A DNA stretch of 64,000 bases, from NCBI GenBank assembly GCA_964036045.1, contig OZ038379.1, positions 26,474,001 through 26,538,000 of the forward strand, given 5' to 3'. The first letter of the stretch is position 1. Every line of letters starts with the position of its first letter. Both the position numbers and the translations under genes were made by a program. The notes under the pieces are model-generated. The model did no database searches. It was not told the DNA's origin and saw nothing but the letters and a program-made list of their open reading frames with translations. Shown piece by piece: positions 1,965 through 49,989 of this stretch. Origin of the DNA: Eutreptiella sp. 'Long Island Sound 2002'. Lineage: Eukaryota; Protista; Euglenida.

Positions 1965-4776
1965 TGTGTTCCCAATGGGTCTGTACCTACACTGTACGCA
2001 ACGACAAAATTACGTCCCCTACAATGGACCCCAGCTGCCCCAGGACTTCTCACCCACACCCCACACACACCCACCAGCAATGCCAGCCCCTTTTTATGCC
2101 TACCCCTGGTAAAAAAATTAGCGTATTTTGGTTCATTTCACCGGGAAACCCTCCGTATCGGCGGAATGTATCGGCGAAAATTAGACACTGCATGTTTCGG
2201 CAGACAGCTTCAGCAGTGTTGGCGAGAGGTGGCCGCCGAAATGGGGGCTTGGTTGGCTGAGTGAGAAAATGCAGACAGGCGATTGCATATGCCCCCTGCG
2301 GTCCAAGTGTAGCCCAGAGCCCAGCCAGGTTTGACCCAGGACATTGTGCACTGTGCTTGCACCGTACATCTTTGAAAAAAAATGCCCATGTCCACTGGGC
2401 AACAGGGGCCTGAGTGCCTGCTAACTGGGGTGAATGCAGAACAGGTATGCACAGCGGGCACATCACTACCAGGACACCAGAGCACAGTGCAACACCACTC
2501 GATGGCCTCCTGCACATCTGCTCCTTCACATCCATATTCTTCATCAAAAATCCTTGTCCCTCGATACCCTATCACCCCGTCACATGCGCCTTGCGTCTGA
2601 TGCTTTCTTTGCTTGTCTGCACCCTTGCTGACAATGCTGTCTATCCTGACTGCCTGCCCAAATGCAGCTTCAATGGCTGGTTCTCATGGGATGCTGTCTG
2701 TCCATTTCCACTGCAAAGACGCACGCACTGGCACTATCCTTCCTCTCTTGTGCACCCATATTGACAGGCCCTCTCTGCCCTCCCATCTGCCATGCACACA
2801 TGATGTGGAATACCAACATTCTATCACCATCTAGCACCATGTGATGGACATGCATGCATTATTGATAGACAAAAATTTCCTTCTCCCACCTCCAGCGCTG
2901 CTTGTCATGTCAAACCCAAGACTGGCCAAGCCTGGTGACTTTCGGCAGGTAACTGTGGCCAAAATCCAAGGAGAAAAGGGGGGTGGGGTCACCTACTCAG
3001 ACCCAGGAGGCCACCCCCCTTGTCCACAGTCCAAAATCACCTTGCCACCAGAAGCACGGGAACACCAGCACTAGCACACCAACGCCCACATGCAAAATCC
3101 ATGAGTCTGTGTGCCTGGTGCGTCCAGGTCCCTTGTTTTGTGTGTCAGATGTACAGTCCACGTATATGTGTGCACATTGTTGGGGAGACAAAGCCACACT
3201 TGTGGTCCATCGCACACAGGACACAACCCACGAACATTTTCAGGGCCAAAATCACCACGAGAGTGCCACATAGACCAAAGCAAATCGTTAAAATTCGCCC
3301 TGAAATCACGGACGACATAACACTCTCCTGTCCAGCAAGACCCAACTGCGTTGGGTGCAACTCAGTAAGACTCAGCTCACACCCAACTTCGTCTGCCCGC
3401 CGGCGACCGGTGTGCCCTGGGCTGCAACTAATGCAGCAGAGGCAGGCCTCCTGCTCAGGTAGCCCACCTCTTTGTTGGTCAGCATCCTTTTGTCTGACGG
3501 ATTCCCTGATTAGAGACCGTTTGATACCCCAGGCCCTTGCATGGGGGCTCTATGCAGACGGCATGTCCTGGTACAAAAACCTTGTCTCTCCCACTGGCCC
3601 TCGCCCACAACTTATTGACTCATTGGAACTGATTGATGCCATATATAAGACAGTGCCTTTCTGCTTTGAAAGCCCAAGTTTCGCACCCTTCAGACACAAC
3701 TCCTCATGCATCCAAAATGAGCATTGGACAGGCACATGCGCACGCCCACGATGGTGCACATCACCATCACCATCCACAAGCACATGCACAGCCACATGCC
3801 CATTCCCCATGAGTCCCACCTGTTATAACGGAGTATCACGCGCACCGCGCGCTCGCACAAACTCGACAAACACGGGTGCTTTGCCCTTGGCGGTACGGCT
3901 CAGCAGTGGCCATTGCATCTTCGGAGGGTGGGTCCAGCTCTGCATTGGAGTACACACTATGAACTTTGGTTTCAGCAACCTGCGCCCATACTGGCCCAAA
4001 GCGGGGGATAGAAGAGTCCACGGCGCGGTAGTAGCTCCGCTTCCGGGCGCCCTAGAAGCTGATCCCTTGTCCCACGGGTGCGGCACCTCCCCTCCGTTTG
4101 AACCACCCGTTCTTCCCCTCAAATGCCTCAGCGGCATCGCACGCTGCCTTCAATTCTGTGCTACAAAGCATTAATTTCTGGACCGTGGGGGCAATGCGCG
4201 CGCAACACGTCTGATAGTCCTCCCACAGCTGACCCACTTCTACCTTTGACGCCAAACCCACAGATCTCATGCTGCCCAACTGTTAAGGAGGTCCAGGGAG
4301 GAGACCCTGCTTGGGTCGCCAGTGGATAGTGCCGCGCCCGACGACACCCTTTAGCCACGCTGCTGGCCATTGCCAATGTAACAGCCCCTTGGCATGAGGT
4401 GGTGGTGGCCTTCAGATGACGTCGTTCCACCTGTCAGCAAAAAGGCAGGCGCATCAGGGGAACGTGGCCTGCATCCACCCTCGTTGAGGAAGGTGTAGAA
4501 AGGCATCATGGGTCACCGCCCATCCAGACTTTGCATAAGTGGGTGTGCCTGCACCGTGCGCTCACCACATTGTGAGGCCGCCAGAAACAGCATCAAACGG
4601 CGGGTTAAGCCTTCCCAACAGATTCGGAGGCACCTGAAATAGCCACATGCTCATCTCCGTCGGGTGATGGTTCTCCTTTTAGCAGTGGTTTTGTCTTTCA
4701 CAGAAGCTTCACGTCAAATTGCACAGGTATGCAACCGTCAATCGCTGGGTGTTGGGCATTGTTTGACCGAGACCGC

Positions 4777-5751
4777 GCGCCTCGTTTAACGAGGCGCACG
4801 GGGGGGGGGGGGGGGGTTGGCGCTAACGAGGCGCACGGGGGAGGGGGGGTTGCGAACGAGGCGTGCGGGGGGGTTTTGGCGCTAACGAGGCGCGCGGGGG
4901 GGGGTTTGGCGCTAACGAGGCGCGCGGGGGGGGGGGGGAATTGGCGCGCTAACGAGGCGCACGGGGGGGGGGGGGTAGTCCACGTACAAGTCCGAGCATA
5001 CACAAGGCGGTGCACATACAAGCCGGTGCATACACAAGGCGGTGCACACACAAGGCGGTGCACACAAAAGGCGGTCTGTAGCCACCGCAGGAGTCTTGTT
5101 ATTTAAGGGGCCACAAGCACGGCGGTACACATAGAAGGCGGTGCACACAAAAGGCGGTACACACACAAGGCGGTGCACACAAAAGGCGGTCTGTAGCCAC
5201 CGCAGGAGTCTTGTTATTTAAGGGGCCACAGGCAAGGCGGTACACACACAAGGCGGTGCACACAAAAGGCGGTCTGTAGCCACCGCAGGAGTCTTGTTAT
5301 TTAAGGGGCCACAGGCAAGGTGGTACACACACAAGGCGATACACACAAAAGGCGGTCTGTAGCCACCGCAGGAGTTTTGTTATTTAAGGGGCCACAGGCA
5401 AGGCGGTACACACAAAAGGCGGTGCACACACAAGGCGGTGCACACAAAAGGCGGTCTGTAACCACCGCAGGAGTCTTGTTATTTAAGGGGCCACAGGCAA
5501 GGCGGTGCACGGGGGGGGGGGGGTTTGGTGCGCTAGCGAGGCGCACAGGGGGGGGGCGGTTTGGCGCTAACGAGGCGCACAGGGGGGGGGGGGTTTGGCG
5601 CTAACGAGGCGCACGGGGGGGGAGTTTGGCGCTAACGAGGCGCACGGGGGGGGGGGGGAGTTTGACGCTAACGAGGCGCACGGGGGGGGGGGGGGTGGCG
5701 CTAACGAGGCGCGCGCCGAGCCCGATTTGCGCCTTGTATAACGAGGCGCGC
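4777..5751. repeat. Composite minisatellite: ctaacgaggcgc+G-run units flanking five ~85-115 bp gtagccaccgcaggagt...ttatttaaggggccac units
   Basis: Tandem units are directly visible. The array is bounded by near-identical palindromes gcgcctcgtt-t-aacgaggcgc (4777-4797) and gcgccttgta-t-aacgaggcgc (5729-5749). Confidence 0.9.
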
Positions 5752-26297: not shown

Positions 26298-27661
26298 CTG
26301 TGGTTTTGGATCGTCGATGCACAGAAAAGGCACCTGGGAGGGTTGGGTAGTGGGGCCCACCAAGGGATAGGGAGGGCTAACAATAGGGTATGCCTTCCCT
26401 GCTGATGGAATCTGTGCAATGTCGCGCACACGGGGGCATGGTGCATGGGGGCACACGCACTCGACAATCACGCAGGTGTGACATGCACAAACGCAGGTAC
26501 GCATGCGTATGCACATCCAGCCTGCGCATGCATATCACGTACAGCCTGATCTCGGCAGGCCCAGCCGTGACCACAATACCGCAGGGTCACCGTCACTGTC
26601 CTCCTCATTCAGATGCAGGCGGCATGCGGAGGCCGCCTGCGTTTCATGCTCCGCAGTCCTCTTGAATTCCAAAAATGCTGGGGTCACCTCACATCCGTCC
26701 CCTCTGCTGGCGAGGCGTTCGGAGTGCGGGGGCTAGTCTAGGCCATGACTCCGTCGTGTACTCAGGTCCTTTCGCAGAAGCGACTTGCGACTTTACTAGA
26801 CTATAAAGTTAGCCTGTAATGCTGTACCAGGTCCCCGCAAACCACGATTCGCCTTGGAAGGGTTCTTGAACAATCATTTAATCGCAGTGGTTATCTCGTT
26901 GACCCCGGTGCAATCGGTGACCATCTTGCCCATCCTTGGCCCTGCTGTGTTTCGCCTCCCTTTCATGGACAATGCCAATCTGCTGTATGGTTCGATAATC
27001 CCAACAGCATCTGATCCAACGGTTAGCTCTACTAGTTCCTTAGAGAAAGATGAACAATAAGAAAAACAAACGGGTTGACCACACCATCTTCAGACGAGGC
27101 TGGGCAACATCAAAGAATAGGACCCAATCCCAATTTTGAACCCATCAAACCTTGCTGGGCGTTATCAATCAATTGTCTATCTCCTTGGATAAGATTCAAT
27201 TTCAACGGCTCACAATCAACCAATCCGACAACGCGTGCCCACCACCACCGAAGAAAGCCTAACACGCTTTAAGTGGGTTGCTACACGAAGTAGTAAAATC
27301 CACAACATTCATACCACAAAAGATCGACAAAGCAAACACAAACAGCCCCAACACAAAACAAGATAAAAGATTGTTCACACAAATAGATTCCCCGGACTAG
27401 TTGCTGGGCTCCAGGGAGCCCGCTGCACCTTGAGTAATCCTTTGTTTTTCCTTTGTTTTTCTTTTTCTTTTTTTTCCCTTTTGTCTTTTTTCTTTCTTTT
27501 TTCCTTTTCTCTTCTTTTCTATCTCTTATGAACTTTGCTGTTGTTTGGCCCTAATGCATTTCACTCCATGTGCATGTTGACTTCAAATGATAAAAGTTTT
27601 CATGTTTTTCAAACATTATTCCACGTAAGAAGTTTTTTGCAGGCCAATTCTCGAGCTTAGC

Positions 27662-29050
27662 ATGACGCTTGTGCGTTTGAGTGGAGCCAAGAGTTTGCGG
27701 GACTCTTTGGTCTCCCAACTCCTTGGTGAGTGGGTGGCTTCATCTCCCTTGGACCGGGCCCGATGGTCCGAGGCCACGGACGTTGGCTACCCCTCCCTTA
27801 TTCGTACTAAGCAAGTGGAGGCGGTGAAACAATACGCCTCCTACCTTTTTCCCGTGCCGGATTTTATTGGGCTCCTCATGGACCTCAATGTCACAAAGAC
27901 GGGGTTCCGCCACCTCTCCGAGTTCATGACCCGGCGAGGAATTGACTATACGGCCGCTACGGGCCACACTTTCCCGCGACCCATCCCAACACGGCAAGCC
28001 TTCTTGGACACGTGGAAGGATATGGCTAAGCCGCTAGAGTTCCGGCCCCCCGTGAACGTGGACGACCCACCCGCTAGTGGCCGCAGTTGGCCCGTGCACT
28101 CATGGGCCCGCTACATTCAATCGCGTCCACCACTAGTGGACACCATTGATTGGGACCGGCCTCTCACGTTTATTGTGCGCGGGGATGCGTGCCCGTGTGC
28201 CGGTGAGAGTTGGACCCAATTGTCTATTGGGCTCCTCAACCACGGCAAACAGGGCCGCACACCCGCCTACTTGTGGGTCATTGGGATGACCGTGTCGTGG
28301 TTGACTGGTGTTGGGTTTTCCTATGCATCCTCCATTGTTGCATGGCCATTGGGCGGCTGCAGGTCGCTTTTGTTGAGGCGCGCCTGGAGTCACTCCCGAA
28401 GGAAAATGCGGAGGCCGTGCAACGATTGTTGTACCGGGCACACACGGGGGTGAAGCTGGGTGCCACCACCGCACCCGATGGGGAGGAGGCCAGGGCCCTC
28501 TTCCTTGCATGTGAGGAGATGGGCCCACTATTGGCCTACGCGCCGGAGGACCCCGAATGGCAAGCCGTTGTTGCCATGAGGGATCTACGTCGGGACTTGT
28601 ACTGCGACACGCCCCCTCTCAATGACCTGGGGGCATCTGCTGTTGCGCAGCAGTACTGTGCACATTGCTACAAAGCCGCCTGCCAGTCCAACTACCTCTC
28701 TACTTGGAGGAGGATGTGACCACGGCGGTGGCTAATGCGGCACGTTTGTGGGTGGGGTTGGGGGCGGTGTGTGCGGATGTGGTAGAAAGCCTAAATGCCA
28801 TTTTAAAACGGGCCTACAACAATCACACAGCCCGGGGGGGGGGGGGAGGGATGCCGGGGGCCACATCCCTAGAAAGGGAGGCGGAGGTAGTTTTGCAAGT
28901 ATGGCAATGGTGGTTTCTGAAATCTGATCTACCCCTTAGGACCCTAGGAACCCCCCATGTGGCCCCATGTACAATGGCCACGCTCATGTCTAACCATAGC
29001 CCCCCACCCATGTCCCTTTCCCTTGCACCCCCAGCTCTTGTAAGCCCTAT
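27662..29050 (+). pseudogene. DDE transposase relic (region of the second Asp deleted, frameshifted)
   Basis: LTFIVRGDACP, FLCILHCCMAIGRL, SNYL..LEEDV and CADVVESLNAILKRAYNNHTARGGG match the motifs of the 47677-49763 protein. Confidence 0.85.
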
Positions 29051-29052
29051 CC

Positions 29053-31731
29053 ATGGACCCAGCCGCAATGGAGGCGTTGATGAACAAAATGTTCGAAAAG
29101 ATGACCGACAAAGTGGTATGTGCTTGTGTGTGCGTGTGTTTGCTTGCCCATGAACCGCATTTGTAGTCAGTAGTTTTCGTTTAAAATTTAACGGGGGCGT
29201 CGCTTTTCTTGGTTTAATTTTAACACCGGCGGTCGTTTAACATTTAAAATCTAAGCTAAAAATGAAGTGTTAAAAATTAAACGAAAAAATTTTAAACCCA
29301 GGTTAATTTTTCCATCTGCTTTCCCTTGCTGATGGAACAAGTGGAGGACCGCCTGCAGTAGGGTGGAGCACCCCCTGAGGGAGCAGTTCGAGCTCCTCCA
29401 GTAGCTGTAGCAGCTCCACCAGCTGCAAGCGGGCGTTCCCCCACCCCCGGAGGGGGAGGGGGAGGGGGGGGCGCGCCGTCCGCCGCCGCCTCCTTTGACG
29501 AGTGGCTCTGGATGAAGGAGGAGCGGTGGCGAGAGAAGGAGGAGAGAAGACGAGAGGAGGAGGAGAGGAGGAGGGCAAAGGAGGAGAGGAGGGCCAGCCA
29601 GTGACAGGGGGGTGGGGGGGTCGAGGTTAAGGCAGAGCAGGGGGAGGTGGTGGTGCCAGAGGATGGGGACGGGAAGGGGGAGGGGGATGAGGATGGGGAG
29701 GGCGATGAGGTCCGGGTGCAGCCCCCCCCCCACACACACACCCTGTTTTACCTCTTCCCGAGTTGCTGCAAAAGGCCCTCGGGAAAGCCTCAGCGGTCTG
29801 CCACAAGGCAGCCGCTGCCCCGTGGTTTGCCCAAGTCCTTGACCAGGGCTGTGGGCCAGACCAACCAATTTTTTCTGACCCCGGCAAGGCTCACTACACC
29901 CTGCGCTAGGTCATGCGCCGACTTTTCCGGTGCCTAATTAGGAAAAATGGGGAGGGCAAGGGGGAGTGGCGGAGGGATGCCGCCAAAGGGGGCGCCTGGC
30001 ACTAGCAGCCAGTGCCGGGCGGTCCCATGTCCCCTACCCGACAGGTAGCTTGGGGTCCCTAGGGGCCCTAAACCTGCTGGCTGACCCCCGGGGGGTCAGG
30101 TTTGGCACCGGCCACGACCTTGTGTGCCTGCAGCACTGGGTAGCCCTTGGCTGGTGCCAACAGTCGCGGCATGGCAAGTCGGTGCAGTTTGCATCCGTGT
30201 GGTTTGCCCTGCTGTCCCTACCCACCCCCCCCCCTAATCCCGCGGCGCAGCACACCTACGAAGGGCTGATGCCTGGGTTGCGGACAACCCGCGGCTTGGT
30301 TGCCGTCACTCAGACGGCACCTCCGGCGGCCACCACCGCCAACAACGCCAACGCGGCCGATCCCGTAGAGGCCCCCAGCCCTGCCTCGAGCTTCAAGCAG
30401 GCGATGGGGCTGCTGCATGCTCTTGGGTGCCCAGAACTTCAGAAGGTATGTGTGTGTATGCGTGTGTTTGTGTGTGTTCAATTTTCCGGACACTTCATTT
30501 AAAACTTTTGGTTTAATATTCAAAATTTCGATCGGCGCTTGAAAAATTAAAAATTAACGTTAAAAATTAAACGAAAAAATGTAGCAAAAGTCATCCGAAA
30601 AATTTAGTTTGTCCCGCGGACAACGGCCACCGCCTGTTTTGTTGCAGGTCAAGGACGTGGCGGTCTGCGGGGACGATGTGCGCCCCGTCCGTGTCGTTTG
30701 GAGCGACAAGGACGGGGAGCGGAGCGTGGGGTTGGGGGGGCTCCACGAGCTTCTCACCCAAGACCCCGCGCTTGGGCTGGCCGTGCTGTGCGGCTTGAAG
30801 GAGTGCGAGCACGGCCGCCAGTGCTCGGAGCTGTGGGGCCCCTCAAGGCCCTACAAGCCCACTTCGTGGGCACACTTGGGGGAGGTAGGGTGGTTGGGGT
30901 GTGAGGATGCGGGGCTTTGGTGGGGGATGGGAGGTGGGGAGGCAAGGCAGGTGAAGGAAGAAAGGGAGGGGGCAAGCACCACCACCACCTCCAACCCCCC
31001 CCTCCAAGCCTAAGCCCCCCCCCCCCCCCCCCAAGAAAGGCAAGGGGGGCAAAGCCCCCCCCCCCCCCCCCGCCCCCCGCAAAGAAGCGGAAGCGGTTCG
31101 AGTCGGACTCGGACGACGAGTCCGACAGCCCCGCCTCTTCCTCTTCGTTGTCCTCCGGCGAAGACACCCCCCCCCGGAATAAGAAACCCCCCCCCAAAGT
31201 CAAAGGCCGTCCCTGCCCCAAAAGAGAAGGGGCGGGAGAAGAAGGCGGAGGGGGGTGGGAAGGAAGCGGGGGGGGGGGAGGTGAAGAAGGAGGAAAGGGG
31301 GGTGGATTCCCGATCCCCTCGTGGGAACCCCCGCCCACGTCCCGTACGGGTGCGGGGTAGAGGTGGGCACCGTCACCGGTGTCCACACCCGCAAGAGCGG
31401 GGTTGTTTGGGTGAGATACCCAAACAACCCCAAGCTCTATGAAGTGGAGCGCCACCTCATCTTCGGCACGGCCGAAGCTGCGGAGGCGCACCTCCAAAAG
31501 GTGCGCAAGGGCAAGACACCCACCACCAACCCCCCCCCCCCCCAACGAAGCCGGCTAACCCCCCGACTAACCCCCAAGAAAACCCTCAACCCAACCCAAA
31601 TACCCCCACTAACCCACCTAATCCCCCAAGCGAAACCCAAGCTACCCCGGCATGATGGGACCCGGAAACGGGCTCCCGGGAGGTTTAACACGGCAACAAT
31701 GGCCGGAATGGCCAAGCACATCGAAGGCTAA
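29053..31731 (+). pseudogene. Spliced accessory gene of the transposon (acidic helix, Pro-rich linkers, small beta domains)
   Basis: Exon 29053-29115 (MDPAAMEALMNKMFEKMTDKV, GT donor; acceptor near 29331 appears mutated). Intron 30446-30647 is GT-AG, phase 0. VAVCGDDVRPVRVVWSD and LIFGTAEAAEAHL match the minus-strand copy at 45005-47795. Confidence 0.7.
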
Positions 31732-32357
31732 GGGGGATGTTCTATGTGTTTTTGTGCTTGTGTAGGGAGGTTTCATTTTTGGAAAGTTTGTTTAAATTTT
31801 GTTGGTTTAAATTTTAATCCCGGCGCCGCATAACATTTAAAATTTACAAATTTTAAACCAAAAATTAATCTCAAATTTTAAAGCCGAGAGCCATTTTAAT
31901 ATTTTTATACATCAAGACGGGTGACCCCCCCCCCCAAACCAAGGCGTAAAATGGTTGACAAACACACAAAGCACCCCATAGGGGTGAAAATTTTCCCAAG
32001 CGACACCCCTAAACCCCCGCAAAAAGTGCATACTTTGGTTTAATCAATTAATTTTTGGCCAAAAATATATTGGATTTAATTTGGGTCTCTAGGGATAGGC
32101 AATCCGTTTGTCTACAACATGTAACTGTTTGAATGTGCTGTCCTCCTGCTGTTTTCAGGCTAGACCGCAGGGCATTCACCGCAGTACTAACCGCCTTAAA
32201 ACAGGGGGTCTGACACCCGGTTCTGTTAGTTTCAAGTGCTCAAACATGAACTCGTTGAGCTTGAGCAGATATCTGACTACGTATGTGGTAAATCCTTGGC
32301 ACGGCAGTCCACCCCTCCTGTTCGGACAGACCGAACCAAACGCCTCCCATACACGAC

Positions 32358-44526: not shown

Positions 44527-45004
44527 CCCTTGGTACACGCTAGAATACCCAATCTCGTTCTAGCCTAGAACAGGCTAGAGAGGCTAGAACGAAAAAAAGA
44601 GGGGGATACCCCCCCCCGCAGGGGGGGGGGGGATGAGGTGTCCAACCTGGACCCCCCTATCCATACTCGGGGGCCCATACTTTTTTTTTCACAATTTCTT
44701 TGTTTTCACCTGATTTTGGAGTCCAAAAATTTTTCGTTCTAGCGGCGTTCTAGCGACGTTCTAGCGAGCGTTCTAGAACGCCGCTAGAACGCCGCTAGAA
44801 CGGTTTGCTAGAACGCCGCTAGAACGATATATATGAATGCTCTGCCACTCCTCAAAGAGAAGCTGCCCCGGCTACCATGGCTAGCCGTGGCCAATCACAG
44901 GGTCCCGATGCTGGACCCGACTCACGGAGCGCCAGGTTCCCCCCCCCCACCCCCCCGGTTAGCCCGGTTAGCCCCCCACCGCACCCCATAGGTCACTTGG
45001 AAGG

Positions 45005-45834
45005 TCACTTGGCGGGCCGGCGCCGGGTCACGTGGTGGTGGGTTAGCCCGATTAGCCCGGTTAGCCCGATTAGCCCCCCTGCCCCCCCAAGCCCCCATTC
45101 GCGAGTCGCGACACGCAGGTTACCCCTCCTGCGTGGTGGGGGGTTGCCGGGGCTCATCCTTGCTCCCGGCACCCCCCTTCTCACCCCCACCCCCGTGTCC
45201 CCTTCCTTCTCACCCCCCTTGTCACCCCCCGCCTCAACCCCCTTGTCACCCCCCTCCCCCTTGTCACCACCCTCGTCCCCCTCGTCGTCCCCGTCATCCC
45301 CGTCGTCCCCGTCGTCCCCGGCCTCCAAGGCTTCCCGGAGGTGGGCCTCCGCCTCCTCCCGGGTGAGGAAGAGGAGGTCCCCCGCCACCCGGAAGGTGCC
45401 CCCCTCTTTCTCCTGCTTCCTCTTCTTCCCCTTCTTCCCCTTCTTCCCCCCCTCCCCCTCCCCATTGGACCCCTGCGACACCACCCACCACTCCCCCGGG
45501 TCCAACTCCTCATCCCAATCCCCCAACACCGTCACTTGGCTGACGGTCCCCCCATTGCCCCCCTCCGCCCAAGGGACATACCGGGTGTCCCCCACGCCCG
45601 GCACATTCCCATATGGGTCCCGGCCCCTTTCTTGCATAGGGGGGGGCTGGGGTTTGGGGGGGGGGGTGGCTTTGCCCTTGCGCTTGGTCTGCGGCTTGGG
45701 CTTGGGCTTGGGCTTGGTGGGGGGGGTGCCTCTTCTTCGTCGCTACTCTCGAAGTGGCGGGGATTTTTCTTGGGGGCCTTGGGGGGGGGGTTTGGGGGCC
45801 TTGGGGGGGGGGTGTCTTCCCCCCCCGCTGCTGG

Positions 45835-45867
<33 letters not shown>

Positions 45868-47795
45868 CATCCCCCCCCGGTCCTGCAACCTGGCCCAGCC
45901 CTTGCGCTGCGGGTCCATGCCCCCCGCACTCCTGCCCGCTTCCCACCTACCCAAACCCTCCAGCACCGAGAGGGCCAAATTGGGGTTCGTCCCCAACATC
46001 CGGCTCAACTCGGTGACCCCCACGAGGCGCGTCCGCCCTCCACCATCGCGCCACTCCACGCGCACCCCGCGGGGGTCGCCTCCACACGTCTGCACGCTGA
46101 CAACCTAAAGAGACAAACAAAATGCAGGTGCGTTCTAGCGGCGTTCTAGGCATGTGTTCTAGCGGCGTTCTAGCGACGTTCTAGCGGCGGCGGTAAGGCG
46201 GTGGCTAGATCAGCGCTAGAACGGTTCGCTAGATCAACGCTAGAACGCAATTGACATACCGTGCCTTGGCGGCCCAGGGCGGGGAAGATGGCCCCCAGTG
46301 CCTTGGCGAAGGCGTCCGCGGGGTTGGGGGGGTGCGGCTGCGGGGGGCCGCCACCGGGGGCTGCGGCGGGCTTGGGCTTGAGCTTGGGCCGGGTGGCGAT
46401 GCCGTGCACCAAGCCGGCATACACCCCCTGGTTCGCCGCCTCGGGGCTGAAACCCCCGAAGTCCAGCGGCGCCGACCAGGTCGGCGTCCACACCCAGGCC
46501 TTCCCCACCCACTCCACCCCCCCCAAGCCCAGCCCCTGCCAGCAGTGGGCGACGAATCGCTAGTGGGTGCCCCCCCCCCCTTTTTCCGCTTGGGGGTGAA
46601 GATGTTGGTTTGCGCCAACTCAGACATCTTCACCCCCCTTTCGGGGGGGGGGGGCCACCTCCCCCCACCGCTTGTTCCCCTGCCCCGGCAACTCACGTTG
46701 CCACCCCCATGACCCCTCGACCACCCCCAGGCGCAGGGGCTTGTCCAGGTGGACAACCCCCCCCCCCCCCCCCCCGTCCACCCATACCCACCGCCCCGCC
46801 CCCAACAGCCGGTGGTGCACCCGCACCAACAAAAACCGGAGAGTCCATACCGGACGCTCCGGGGCGACGAGGAGGGGGTGTCCATGTTTGGGGGGTGGGG
46901 GCCAGCCAGGACTGCGGGGTCCCATGGCAAGTCCTGGAGGGCCCACGCAGCCCTCGACCCCATCAACCCCCTGAGCCAGTCGCCCCCCCCCCCCCCCCCC
47001 CCCCCCCCCCCGCCGGCGCCGCCTCCACCACCTTGGTCTCCTCCTCCTCATCCTTCACGCTCGCCTCCTCCTCCATCTCGCCATGCACGTCCACCTCCAC
47101 CACCTCATCCATCTCCTCGTCCTTCACCCTCGCCACCACCGCCGCCAACTGCCTCTCGCACTGCTCACCGCCCGGTCGAACCCCTCCACCGCTGCCGCCT
47201 TCTCGGCCACCTTCGCCTTCGCCTTGCGAAGGTTGGCCTCCGCCCACTCCACCCCTTCCTCCTCCGCTCCATCCTCCATGAGGCTCCGCAATTTTACCTC
47301 CCAGGCCGAGACTTTCGTCTCCGCCCGGGTCTTGGCCGCCCTGGAGGCGGCGCGGGATTCCAAGAACCCTTTGAGCTCTCCCCACGCCGCCTCCACCTCT
47401 GCCGGTTCCTCCAACGCCGCCGCCCCCTTCCGGGCTACCAATGGGGGAGGGGGTGGCGACGGTGGACGATGGGCTTGGGGTTGGGGCTTGGGCTTGGGCT
47501 TGGGCTTGGCGAGGGGGGCTTTGGGGTGCGGGGCCTGCTCGGCCTTCGGCTCCTCCGCCGCACGCCTGTCCGCCTCTAGGATTTGCGCAATCAGCGCCTG
47601 GGTCGCTGCGTTCTGTAGCACAAGAGCGTTCTAGCGGCGTTCTAGGCATCTATTCTAGCGGCGTTCTAGCGACAGTCTAGCGGCCGATCGTGCTGCCTAG
47701 ATCAAGACTAGAACGATTCCCTAGATCACCGCTAGAACGCACAGCACGAAATATACCTGCCTCACCAGCTCGTCCAACTGCTCCCGCGTAGCCAT
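45005..47795 (-). pseudogene. Spliced accessory gene of the transposon (frameshifts, several at homopolymer runs)
   Basis: Exons 47795-47757 (MATREQLDELVRQ), 47612-46260 and 46104-45005. Both introns are GT-AG, phase 0, at positions matching the 29053-31731 homolog. Confidence 0.72.
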
Positions 47796-49763
47796 CTTGG
47801 ATTGCAAAAGTCTGGTTACGGGAAGCCTGCATGTGACCCTGGCCCCTCCTTACCTCCATGGCATCCCTGCCCGAGCATGGCACTGGCAACCGTGGCCCCC
47901 CATGCACAACCCACGACACGTCAAAGTACGCAAACAACCATGTCATGCACTGTGCTTGCACATTGGCCTCCCTGTGGATGGCCGACAATTGACGACCCAA
48001 CACCTCGTCCACCCCCTCCACCCAACAGCCCCCCCCCCCCCCCCCCCCCCGGTTGCTGTGCTCGTTGTGACCATTTTTCAGAAAGCGGTCAATGCTTTCC
48101 GAAATGTCACCGGAGAACATAGCCAGGCCAAAAGGCTTAATGTTCTGCAACATGGTATCTACATCCTGCTCAAGGCTTAGTAGATACCATGATGCTGTTC
48201 CAGCAGCGCAGTGTCGCCGGAAATCGCGCGCAACAGCAGCACAATTCAAAGGGTTAGGGCCCTGATATGTACAATAGAGGGCCTGCAACGGGTCCCACAT
48301 GTTCGCGATGGCCTTGTACTTGGCCGTGCTTGGCCTAATGCCGAGGCACTTAGCAATATCCGGCCATGCGTCAAAAAAATTGGCCGTCTCCTCCCCATTC
48401 GGGGATGCTGACCCATAAACGCTCCAACCTGCACGCCTCTCCGACAGGAGAACTTGCAGGTCTCGACGGAGCGCAGGGGTGACCAACCTAGCCTCCCGAT
48501 CGAGAAACTCCCCCAACAAGCGGCCCATGGCCATTGTCAGGTGCAAAATGCACAAGACGAGCCAGGGACGTGGCAATTTCAAAATGGGCTGCGTACTGCA
48601 GCCGGCGGCTTGCAAGGATGGCGTCCCAAGGAGGAAGGCCGTGTAGTTGGCCTCATCACCCTCCATGGTCCGGGGGTTAGCACTACCCTCCCAAGTCTTC
48701 GTTGGGGCATTCCATATGCCCTCATTGAACATGGAGCCCACTTGGGGGCATGTGGACACCCCGATCACCCGTCGCGTCCACGGTTCATCCCCCCCGAGGA
48801 TCACCTTTGCCTCCTCCTTGGAGGCCCCCCATTGGACCAGCCCCGTGTCGATGATCTCTTGAACCACCTAAACACGAAACATGGGGGGTGGTTAATTTCG
48901 TTCTAGTCTAGTCCAATCTAGCGTCTAGCGAGCGGTGTTTGAGGCCCACTAGATCAAAACTAGAACGAGTGAAAGGCACTAGGTGAGAGGACTACCTCCC
49001 AATTGCTCTTCCACAACGTCCCAAGGGTCTCCATGGCCTTGTCATCGCAATTGGCCATGCTCAACATCCAAAGGCCCGCTGGGGAGCGGGCTAAGCGCTC
49101 GAAGTTGGCCAAGGAGATGGTGAGTTGGGTCCAATTGCCCCCGGCCACGGGGTAGGCATCTCCCCGGACGATGAACGTCAACGGGAAGGTGCGGTTGATT
49201 GACCGCACCAAGCCCGGCCGGGAGAGGATGTATGTGACCCATGAGGCGAAGGGCCATGAGATCCCGGTCGCCTTGGGCAACACCGTGGCAACGGGGTTGT
49301 CCAATTGCACCGGGGCGACCAACTCCTTCCAACGGGCTTGGAAAGCCCGCTCGGTACAAATTGGCCGGGAGTAGGGGCCACTAGGGACGGTGCGGTGATA
49401 CCCCAACTTACGGAGCGTGTAGAGCTCCAAGAGGGTCCTCCACGACGACTTGGGGGCCCTCATGTTGAGCACTAGTTCACACATGGCGGTGGGGGGAAGT
49501 AGGGAGGCGGCGTCTGCCTCAACGGCGGCCTTGCACGCCTCACCCGTGGTTTGGGTAGAAGTGGCGGAGTTCACATGTTGGACGGCGTTGTTGAAGTGCC
49601 GCCGTGCTAGGGGGCATGATAGCGCCCACGTGGCCAAGTAATGGCCCACCCGCTCATCCTTGAGGGTTGAGGCCCCACTCAACTCCCGTAGTGCCTTGGA
49701 CAAGAGGGAAGTATCCTTCCCGGGTGAGGAGGGAGCAAGGGGGGTAGTGGCGGGGCGTTTCAT
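47677..49763 (-). CDS. Apparently intact ~652-aa DDE transposase, two exons (49763-48996, 48867-47677)
   Basis: GT-AG phase-0 intron 48995-48868. Motifs FIVRGDAYP (D), LSMANCDDKAMETL, ILGGDEPWTRRVIG (D), LCILHLTMAMG (C2H/LH) and FGLAMFSGDISESIDRFLK (E). The start codon is my best guess. Confidence 0.85.
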
Positions 49764-49989
49764 TGCAAAGAAATGTGCAATATCTAAGCGGGAAAGAAGG
49801 AAGCATGGAACAATGCACGACGGATGATAGCAAGCAAGCATGCACGCACGCACGCACGGAACAATGAAGAAATTGGGATACGTTGGTAGACATTATATCG
49901 TTCTAGTATTGATCTAATCTAGGCTAGAACGTTCTAGCTAGAGCGTTCTAGGCTAGAATGAGATTGGGTTCTCTAGCGTGTACCAAGGG

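Follow-up and report, generated by a model that had tools for sequence, protein, structure and literature searches.

A degraded element copy and a probable two-gene cut-and-paste transposon lineage with a conserved accessory gene in the euglenid Eutreptiella

Two related mobile elements in a 64-kb window

We analysed a 64,000-nucleotide stretch of the genome of the euglenid Eutreptiella sp. 'Long Island Sound 2002' (NCBI GenBank assembly GCA_964036045.1, contig OZ038379.1, positions 26,474,001 to 26,538,000 of the forward strand), referred to below as the window and numbered from its first letter. Two related elements were identified, one on the plus strand at 27647-32094 (family A) and a diverged relative on the minus strand at 44527-49989, used here as a comparator (family B). 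Both have termini of the form CCC...GGG and a 2-bp target duplication, and in both, as in a third family of the same genome (family C), the predicted exons give one gene order, namely a two-exon transposase followed on the same strand by a three-exon accessory gene. Judged by their sequences, families A and B read as two diverged families of a single cut-and-paste transposon lineage. An original prediction, which had described the family A region as a second, highly diverged family member with the gene order of the element at 44527-49989, is borne out by colinear, same-strand protein matches of 40% identity over 217 amino acids (aa) of the transposase (E 1e-40) and 39.5% over 86 aa of the accessory protein (block VKDVAVCGDD.. 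against VVSVQTCGGD..; E 2e-8). Taken together, the findings below suggest that the region is probably a dead family A copy of a high-copy, two-gene cut-and-paste lineage that carries a conserved auxiliary partner gene.

Ten family A copies were retrieved from the 2.28-Gb genome for analysis of ends, duplications and deletions. Full-length family A elements measure 5.1-5.2 kb and have the ends CCCTAGAGACC.../...GGTCTCTAGGG. The 3' 355 bp recurs genome-wide at 89-94% identity (929 first-look candidates); all 40 matches scored end within 6 bases of window position 32094, 36 of them exactly there, and 32094 is the true 3' terminus of the family A copy. Both termini (CCCTAGAGACC... and its inverse) were present in eight of the ten retrieved copies, and a 2-bp direct duplication (GT, TA, CA, TA, AG, AT and GC) flanks seven of these eight. 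The terminal inverted repeat of family B is 52 nt long, starts with CCCTTGG and has CA on both flanks. Families A and B possess the terminal inverted repeats and short, fixed target duplication of CMC/Transib-type elements. First-look candidates in the genome numbered 7,457 for the family B transposase exon and 26,917 for family C, whose young copies are 96-100% identical to each other, and thousands of copies account for a sizeable share of the open reading frames (ORFs) without names in this ~2.3-Gb genome. At the DNA level, A and B can be aligned only in patches (25-90 nt, 72-92% identity), so that the earlier description of DNA similarity as not evident was fair, whereas translated family A frames give only colinear matches to family B, on the expected strand.

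Internal-deletion derivatives with intact ends were also common among the family A copies (L023, L024, L027, L028, L031 and others). One 1.2-kb copy (L030, 7702-8883) joins the first ~445 bp of the element to the last ~740 bp.

State of the family A copy in the window

The window copy, which is 5'-truncated and internally deleted, shares 94.8% identity with the family A majority sequence. Its homology to family A begins at 27647, not at the true 5' end; other copies share a further ~330 bp upstream of this point, which the window copy lacks, and the left terminus of family A is not present anywhere in the 64-kb window. The extent first proposed, 27662-32094, is hence exact at the 3' end, whereas on the left the homology starts earlier, the true end is missing and the copy is dead. 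At the truncated 5' edge (27400-27646) lie a CT-rich low-complexity stretch and then unrelated AT-rich DNA.

All features of this copy lie on the plus strand. A remnant of transposase exon 1 (27662-28295) runs from the ATG to a deletion point; it contains the motif FIVRGDA and accounts for the 217-aa match, which lies in exon 1 of the family B transposase. The deletion, of ~500 bp at 28295, removes the end of exon 1, the transposase intron and the start of exon 2, the remainder of which (28296-29153) holds the motifs CILH and ESLN and a stop codon at 29151-29153, its tail overlapping accessory exon 1 out of frame. The accessory gene comprises exon 1 (29053-29115), intron 1 (29116-29331), exon 2 (29332-30445), intron 2 (30446-30647) and exon 3 (30648-31731), and is followed by an AT-motif-rich 3' subterminal region (31732-32094) that includes the right terminal inverted repeat (32075-32094). 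Lesions are numerous: the intron 1 acceptor (29329-29331) reads CTG where family A has CAG, exon 2 is broken by frameshifts and by three stop codons (TAG at 29359, TGA at 29602 and TAG at 29907), and exon 3 contains a TAA at 31011 together with frame changes in C/G runs. The gene model of the original prediction is therefore the family A model, as read through a decayed copy.

Organisation of the accessory gene

Accessory exon 1 is a short exon of 21 codons in family A, 13 in family B and 24 in family C, and in all three families it shares sequence with the 3' tail of the transposase ORF but is read in another frame. As had been predicted, methionine-initiated exons of 21 and 13 aa precede the first intron in the two window elements, at 29053-29115 with a GTATGT donor in family A, and at 47795-47757 (minus strand) with a GTATAT donor in family B. 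The ATG lies within CCATGG in families A and C and within AAGATGG in family B, with a pyrimidine tract and an AG upstream and a GT downstream. Among copies recovered by blastn, the ATG and open frame are kept in 6/6 family A, 13/13 family B and 7/7 family C copies, and the GT donor in 5/6, 13/13 and 6/7, respectively.

The overlap of the transposase and accessory ORFs allows a different reading, in which the downstream exons are C-terminal exons of the transposase, linked to it through an additional small intron or alternative splicing, so that a transcript would yield a single long protein or else both forms. Consistent with such a fusion, a 57-nt stretch in family B (GAG/GTAAGG ... CCAAG/ATGG) could be spliced out so as to join both frames, and in the family C ORF P0066 the short exon is read in frame with the transposase. 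P0066 is, however, a single-member cluster with a 1-nt shift, and the common family C sequence (P0068, 46 members; L044) keeps the frames apart. Furthermore, families A and C conserve no in-phase donor/acceptor pair like that of B, the segment lost by such splicing is conserved between A and C as protein in the transposase frame, splicing from the transposase frame at the shared donor in family B enters an unconserved frame, and the accessory ATG is kept in 26/26 copies. A fusion with the transposase was rejected on this frame, donor/acceptor and ATG conservation, and we consider it improbable.

Both introns of a separate accessory gene are predicted to be of the GT-AG type and in phase 0. The intron 1 acceptor is CAG in the family A majority sequence and in families B and C. 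Intron 2 of family A (GT..CAG) is bounded by CAGAAG/GT at 30445/30446 and CAG/GTC at 30647/30648; in family B, exon 2 (47612-46260, minus strand) ends at ACG/GT (46260/46259) and exon 3 starts at 46104 on the same strand, following TAG/GTT (46105/46104). This intron interrupts all three families at the identical residue (A ..ELQK/VKDV.., B ..RQGT/VVSV.., C ..VDTR/MEDI..), and the later phase-0 intron that had been placed at PELQK/VKDVAVCGDD and RQGT/VVSVQTCGGD falls exactly there (30445/30648 and 46260/46104). Its position also appears to be kept in about seven further lineages, since in their ORFs the residue preceding the domain start is Q in 12/12 correctly registered cases, after Leu, Ser, Phe or Pro codons, as would result from translation of a pyrimidine tract and a CAG acceptor.

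Exon 2 encodes, in order, a Pro-rich stretch, a coiled-coil-like Arg/Glu stretch, an acidic stretch and a conserved region of ~230 aa, in which the blocks EW..ALG, YTLRW, W..LG..GK.V.F..W and F.QA.G are common to families A, B and C. Exon 3 is a single exon that remains intact over 353 aa from acceptor to stop in the family A copy L025 (L025:875-1933, minus strand), and several database ORFs of families B and C run unbroken from the linker into the C-terminal block. An additional intron within family A exon 3 was considered and ruled out, as L025 reads straight through. In the window copy, the linker between the N- and C-terminal parts of exon 3 contains a basic KKRKR run followed by FESDSDDE (31080-31125); a motif of this kind, a basic run and then an acidic Ser patch, recurs in A, B, C and the relatives P0285, P0236 and P0276. 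It resembles a nuclear localisation signal with an acidic Ser patch, and may function as such. Copies L023 and L026 each carry ~2.1 kb of extra sequence within exon 3, an insert that the window copy does not have.

Frames were also observed to shift at long G/C runs, in the window at ~29440-29470, 29720, 31010-31075 and 45640-45670. Ahead of the family C C-terminal domain (L049-L056), a G run has 11 G in most copies, which places that domain out of the frame of the linker; copy L050, with 12 G, keeps the frame, and the database ORF P0078 likewise reads through. These homopolymer frame changes could be due to assembly error, a mutation hot spot or slippage.

Conservation of the transposase and the accessory protein

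Sequence searches and fold predictions were run exon by exon rather than on joined exons. The transposases of the three families are 31-53% identical across high-scoring segment pairs, with further A-B matches of 32% over 129 aa and 30% over 105 aa, and with 43-44% identity between C and B. Searches with the transposase exon pieces matched nothing in Pfam and no PDB sequence. With the corresponding exon of family B, the nearest named protein language-model clusters were RAG1 fragments (scores 0.90-0.93), which provides a lead toward a RAG1-like transposase. When metagenomes were scanned with the transposase profile, none of the 80 pattern matches was confirmed. Also identified was a database transposase (P0064/P0337, on a 3,245-bp ENA contig and a 3,947-bp Logan contig) that is 44-50% identical to those of families B and C. 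P0064 is absent from this genome, where its best match is 51%, so that the lineage must be present in one or more other organisms.

Beyond the 86-aa block, weaker colinear matches between the A and B accessory proteins were obtained by pairwise tblastn with the low-complexity filter on, in exon 2 (E 0.025) and in the C-terminal block (E 0.021). Comparison of the two family profiles aligned this C-terminal block over 60 columns at 32% identity (P = 0.0012), with the pairing that the original prediction had written when it called the block conserved, and family C together with a C-like subfamily bridges the A and B sequences. One Trp is invariant across nine lineages in this block, and an aromatic residue is common at two further positions, these being the residues considered for a putative aromatic cage that would bind methyl-lysine or methyl-arginine. 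The exon-3 domain is 27-43% identical among A, B and C, and the N-terminal domain of exon 3 is shared by eight or more lineages. When 1.84 billion representative sequences were searched with an exon-3 profile built from alignment A6, 183 proteins passed E <= 0.001, of which 75 also passed E <= 1e-10; many of the 183 are only 25-60% identical to A, B or C. The ten relative clusters that were looked up for their source were all ORFs of ENA contigs, one of them also found in Logan.

The window DNA is GC-rich and stop-poor, with several frames open at once, and the Pro/Gly/Glu-rich stretches produce many spurious matches when filters are off. It might accordingly be proposed that the accessory ORFs are chance frames whose similarity stems from low-complexity sequence. 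With filters on, however, only colinear matches in the correct frame remain; the 75 relatives at E <= 1e-10, the confident folding of two exon-3 domains (predicted local distance difference test (pLDDT) of 72-92) and the domain-specific conservation of a two-copy pair described below also speak against chance frames, and we regard this explanation as scarcely credible.

Among family A copies, the ratio of nonsynonymous to synonymous differences per site (pN/pS) is 0.38 in the C-terminal block and 0.35 in the exon-3 N-terminal domain. Synonymous differences between the families approach saturation (pS 0.58-0.68), and identity at third codon positions is 0.30-0.42 as against 0.43-0.54 at positions 1 and 2. 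We also found an exon-3 relative of ordinary base composition, P0285/P0338 (G000:C3:146849011-146850225 and G000:C6:16315586-16316743, both on the minus strand). In the genome, only two sequences match P0285 strongly (100% and 81% identity), and six more match it weakly (26-29%). With both frames open, hand-counted identity between P0285 and P0338 is 95% in the N-terminal domain and 92% in the C-terminal domain, compared to ~75% in the linker and upstream sequence. The pair may be a selected lineage of low copy number, or else a host gene that arose from the partner. Given the same exon plan in three families whose DNA can hardly be aligned, the 183 relatives, the pN/pS values of family A, the near-saturation of synonymous differences and the domain conservation of P0285/P0338, these results support the earlier proposal that the accessory protein is old and selected.

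Predicted folds of the exon-3 domains

AlphaFold, given the intact exon 3 with an 18-row alignment, returned two confident domains separated by disorder. Residues 1-63 (window 30648-30836) form three strands and two helices (pLDDT 72-91), and residues 222-279 (window 31357-31503) form five strands (222-260) and a helix (268-279; pLDDT 79-92). In the model, the latter domain possesses the five-stranded, bent antiparallel barrel of ~50-60 residues that is typical of Royal-family and SH3-like folds. By exhaustive structural alignment, the barrel matched the C-terminal domain of the mouse mammary tumour virus (MMTV) integrase (Z 5.5, root-mean-square deviation (rmsd) 2.2, 51 residues aligned), the SH3-like domain of myosin VI (Z 5.5, rmsd 1.7), the MOF chromo barrel (Z 5.3, rmsd 3.0, 65 aligned including the helix) and the Tudor domains of RBBP1, TDRD3 and SMN (Z 4.7-5.0), values that would support the fold class only, and neither a function nor a specific family. 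Foldseek gave no PDB match at E <= 0.001 (best E 0.12), the weak top rows for the barrel being chromo-barrel, Tudor, PWWP and myosin SH3-like domains. The suggestion that the small C-terminal domain is an SH3/Tudor-like barrel is thus supported at fold level, and we describe the block as SH3/Tudor/chromo-barrel-like in its predicted structure. The N-terminal module aligned with the chromodomains of SUV39H1 and Rhino (Z 4.3 and 4.2, rmsd 2.7-2.8, 53-54 aligned) and may be termed chromodomain-like, which is the weaker of the two assignments.

No Pfam family matched any exon piece of families A, B and C (E <= 1 to 10), nor any of 24 diverged relatives, and the Royal-family profiles (Chromo, Tudor, Tudor-knot and PWWP) gave neither a Pfam nor a PDB sequence match. 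PDB sequence and profile searches of the accessory exons yielded no meaningful match, and a protein language-model atlas contained no relative of the exon-2 region (best score 0.76).

Barrels of the chromo and Tudor type are characteristic of chromatin proteins of the host, no homology was detected between the second gene and known transposon accessory proteins, and a two-copy relative of ordinary composition is present in the genome. Such features would also be consistent with a passenger, that is, a host gene captured once and without a role in transposition. Yet the position, strand, exon plan and intron position of the second gene are identical in three families whose transposases are only 31-53% identical, it co-diverges with the transposase, and pN/pS is below 1 among family A copies. 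A useless passenger would furthermore be lost from a lineage that readily forms internal-deletion derivatives. We accordingly give little credence to the passenger explanation, and favour an auxiliary partner gene of the element.

Family-specific motifs in introns and subterminal regions

Each family possesses a short motif of its own: a TTTAAA/AAATT-type motif in family A, CTAGAACG (also given as CGTTCTAG) in family B and GGAACGTCGCC in family C. The motif fills every intron, including the transposase intron of family C, and in A and B also the subterminal regions. Clusters in the window lie at 29174-29311 (within intron 1, which is dense in the motif), 30490-30577 and 31780-32080 for family A, and at 44729-44832, 46128-46253 and 47621-47742 for family B; in family C (L044 and L049 combined) they lie at 1372-1396, 3190-3289 and 4862-4959. 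From their sequence and placement, the intronic motifs look like additional putative binding sites, located where coding is undisturbed. As each family has its own motif in subterminal regions or introns, some protein of the element must read a family-specific sequence, and this might be either the partner or the N-terminus of the transposase.

Proposed role and expression of the partner

We propose that the partner is a nuclear auxiliary protein, which would self-associate through its coiled-coil-like stretch, bind DNA or chromatin, and aid a RAG1-like transposase in end recognition, in synapsis (the pairing of ends) or in target choice. Its expression from the primary transcript of the element would be explained most simply if the AG acceptor that immediately precedes the accessory ATG is used, either through spliced-leader trans-splicing onto a bicistronic precursor or through an En/Spm-style alternative cis-splice that skips the transposase. 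With respect to the first route, a query with the spliced-leader sequence of Euglena gracilis gave ~5,500 matches in the genome with up to 2 mismatches allowed; all listed matches are exact, and a reversed control gave 0. The host genome is therefore probably of the Euglena type, with spliced-leader trans-splicing. Many of these leader matches occur in regularly spaced arrays near one chromosome end (e.g. C2:22678-1731223). If the first route is the one taken, the lineage would offer a first look at the expression of a two-gene transposon in a host with spliced-leader trans-splicing.

Several observations weigh against a functional two-gene system as proposed here. The window copy itself is dead and, as its sequence reads, able to make neither protein, and reading frames across the long G/C runs are uncertain. 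Among family B copies pN/pS is ~1, as expected if these younger copies decay neutrally. Similarity to known structures is weak (Z 4.2-5.5, Foldseek E >= 0.12), such that chromo, Tudor, integrase C-terminal and myosin SH3-like barrels are indistinguishable. In a hand alignment to an HP1 sequence, the N-terminal module lacks two of the three classical aromatic-cage positions, and retains only the W/Y of VRV.W among cage-type residues. Finally, the conserved exon-2 region gave no usable AlphaFold model (mean pLDDT 40).

Comparison with known two-gene transposon systems

Few two-gene DNA transposons are known to us, namely En/Spm, PIF/Harbinger and ProtoRAG, and each known two-gene system is informative as to how a nuclease is aimed and licensed. 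Among the results listed by a literature search, none connected Euglena with CACTA, EnSpm, Transib or Chapaev elements. As no Pfam profile of any kind matched the exons of families A, B and C, none was matched for TnpA, RAG2, Kelch, PHD or Myb/SANT either. The original prediction had likened the accessory protein to TnpA of CACTA elements and to the RAG2-like partner of RAG transposons, an analogy that holds for the position of the gene; it does not extend to Pfam matches, or to the orientation of RAG1 and RAG2.

Like TnpA of En/Spm, the partner is a second protein whose gene lies on the strand of the transposase in a cut-and-paste element with short subterminal repeats, and here, too, expression may use an acceptor that bypasses the transposase ORF. 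CMC-type elements have similar terminal motifs and a short (2-3 bp) duplication. The partner described here is situated wholly downstream of the transposase, whereas TnpA exons flank it around an intron. It also differs in its predicted chromo- and SH3-like barrels, and the TnpA profile (Pfam Transposase_24) matched no exon of A, B or C.

PIF/Harbinger elements are likewise two-gene DNA transposons, whose Myb/SANT-like ORF2 protein is needed for nuclear import and end binding. Their transposase belongs to an unrelated superfamily, their termini and duplication differ, and the partner identified here has no Myb/SANT Pfam match. Small barrels are similarly tied to integration machinery in the integrase chromodomains of chromoviruses and the SH3-like C-terminal domains of retroviral integrases. 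In the present lineage, however, the barrels are predicted on a separate protein of a DNA transposon and not on the enzyme, and there is no sequence similarity.

As in RAG2/ProtoRAG systems, the partner travels with a transposase that may be RAG1-like and carries, in its predicted structure, a fold of the chromatin-reader class (a PHD finger in RAG2). The genes here are in tandem on one strand with the transposase first, as opposed to convergent, and the duplication is 2 bp. RAG2, RAG2_PHD and Kelch had no Pfam match, and the exon-3 model shows two small domains and no propeller. There being no homology to RAG2, the partner would therefore be at most an independent solution. A bolder proposal is that a euglenid RAG1-like lineage long ago independently gained a chromatin- or DNA-reading partner with chromodomain-like and Tudor/SH3-like modules, that this partner is expressed from a bicistronic transcript by spliced-leader trans-splicing, that one or more of its descendants (the P0285/P0338 pair) were domesticated by the host, and that the whole forms a functional parallel to RAG1-RAG2; in this full form we think it unlikely.

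Taken together, these comparisons suggest, by analogy, that the partner works in the manner of TnpA, Harbinger ORF2 and RAG2, as a non-catalytic protein encoded by the element, while being a member of none of these groups. It is without sequence relatives outside the searched contig set, yet two predicted folds, the linker and the intron position are kept across deep divergence. Should the partner prove necessary, the lineage would offer an independent instance, open to experiment, of a RAG1-type enzyme in need of a reader-type cofactor, and would bear directly on how the RAG1-RAG2 partnership could arise.

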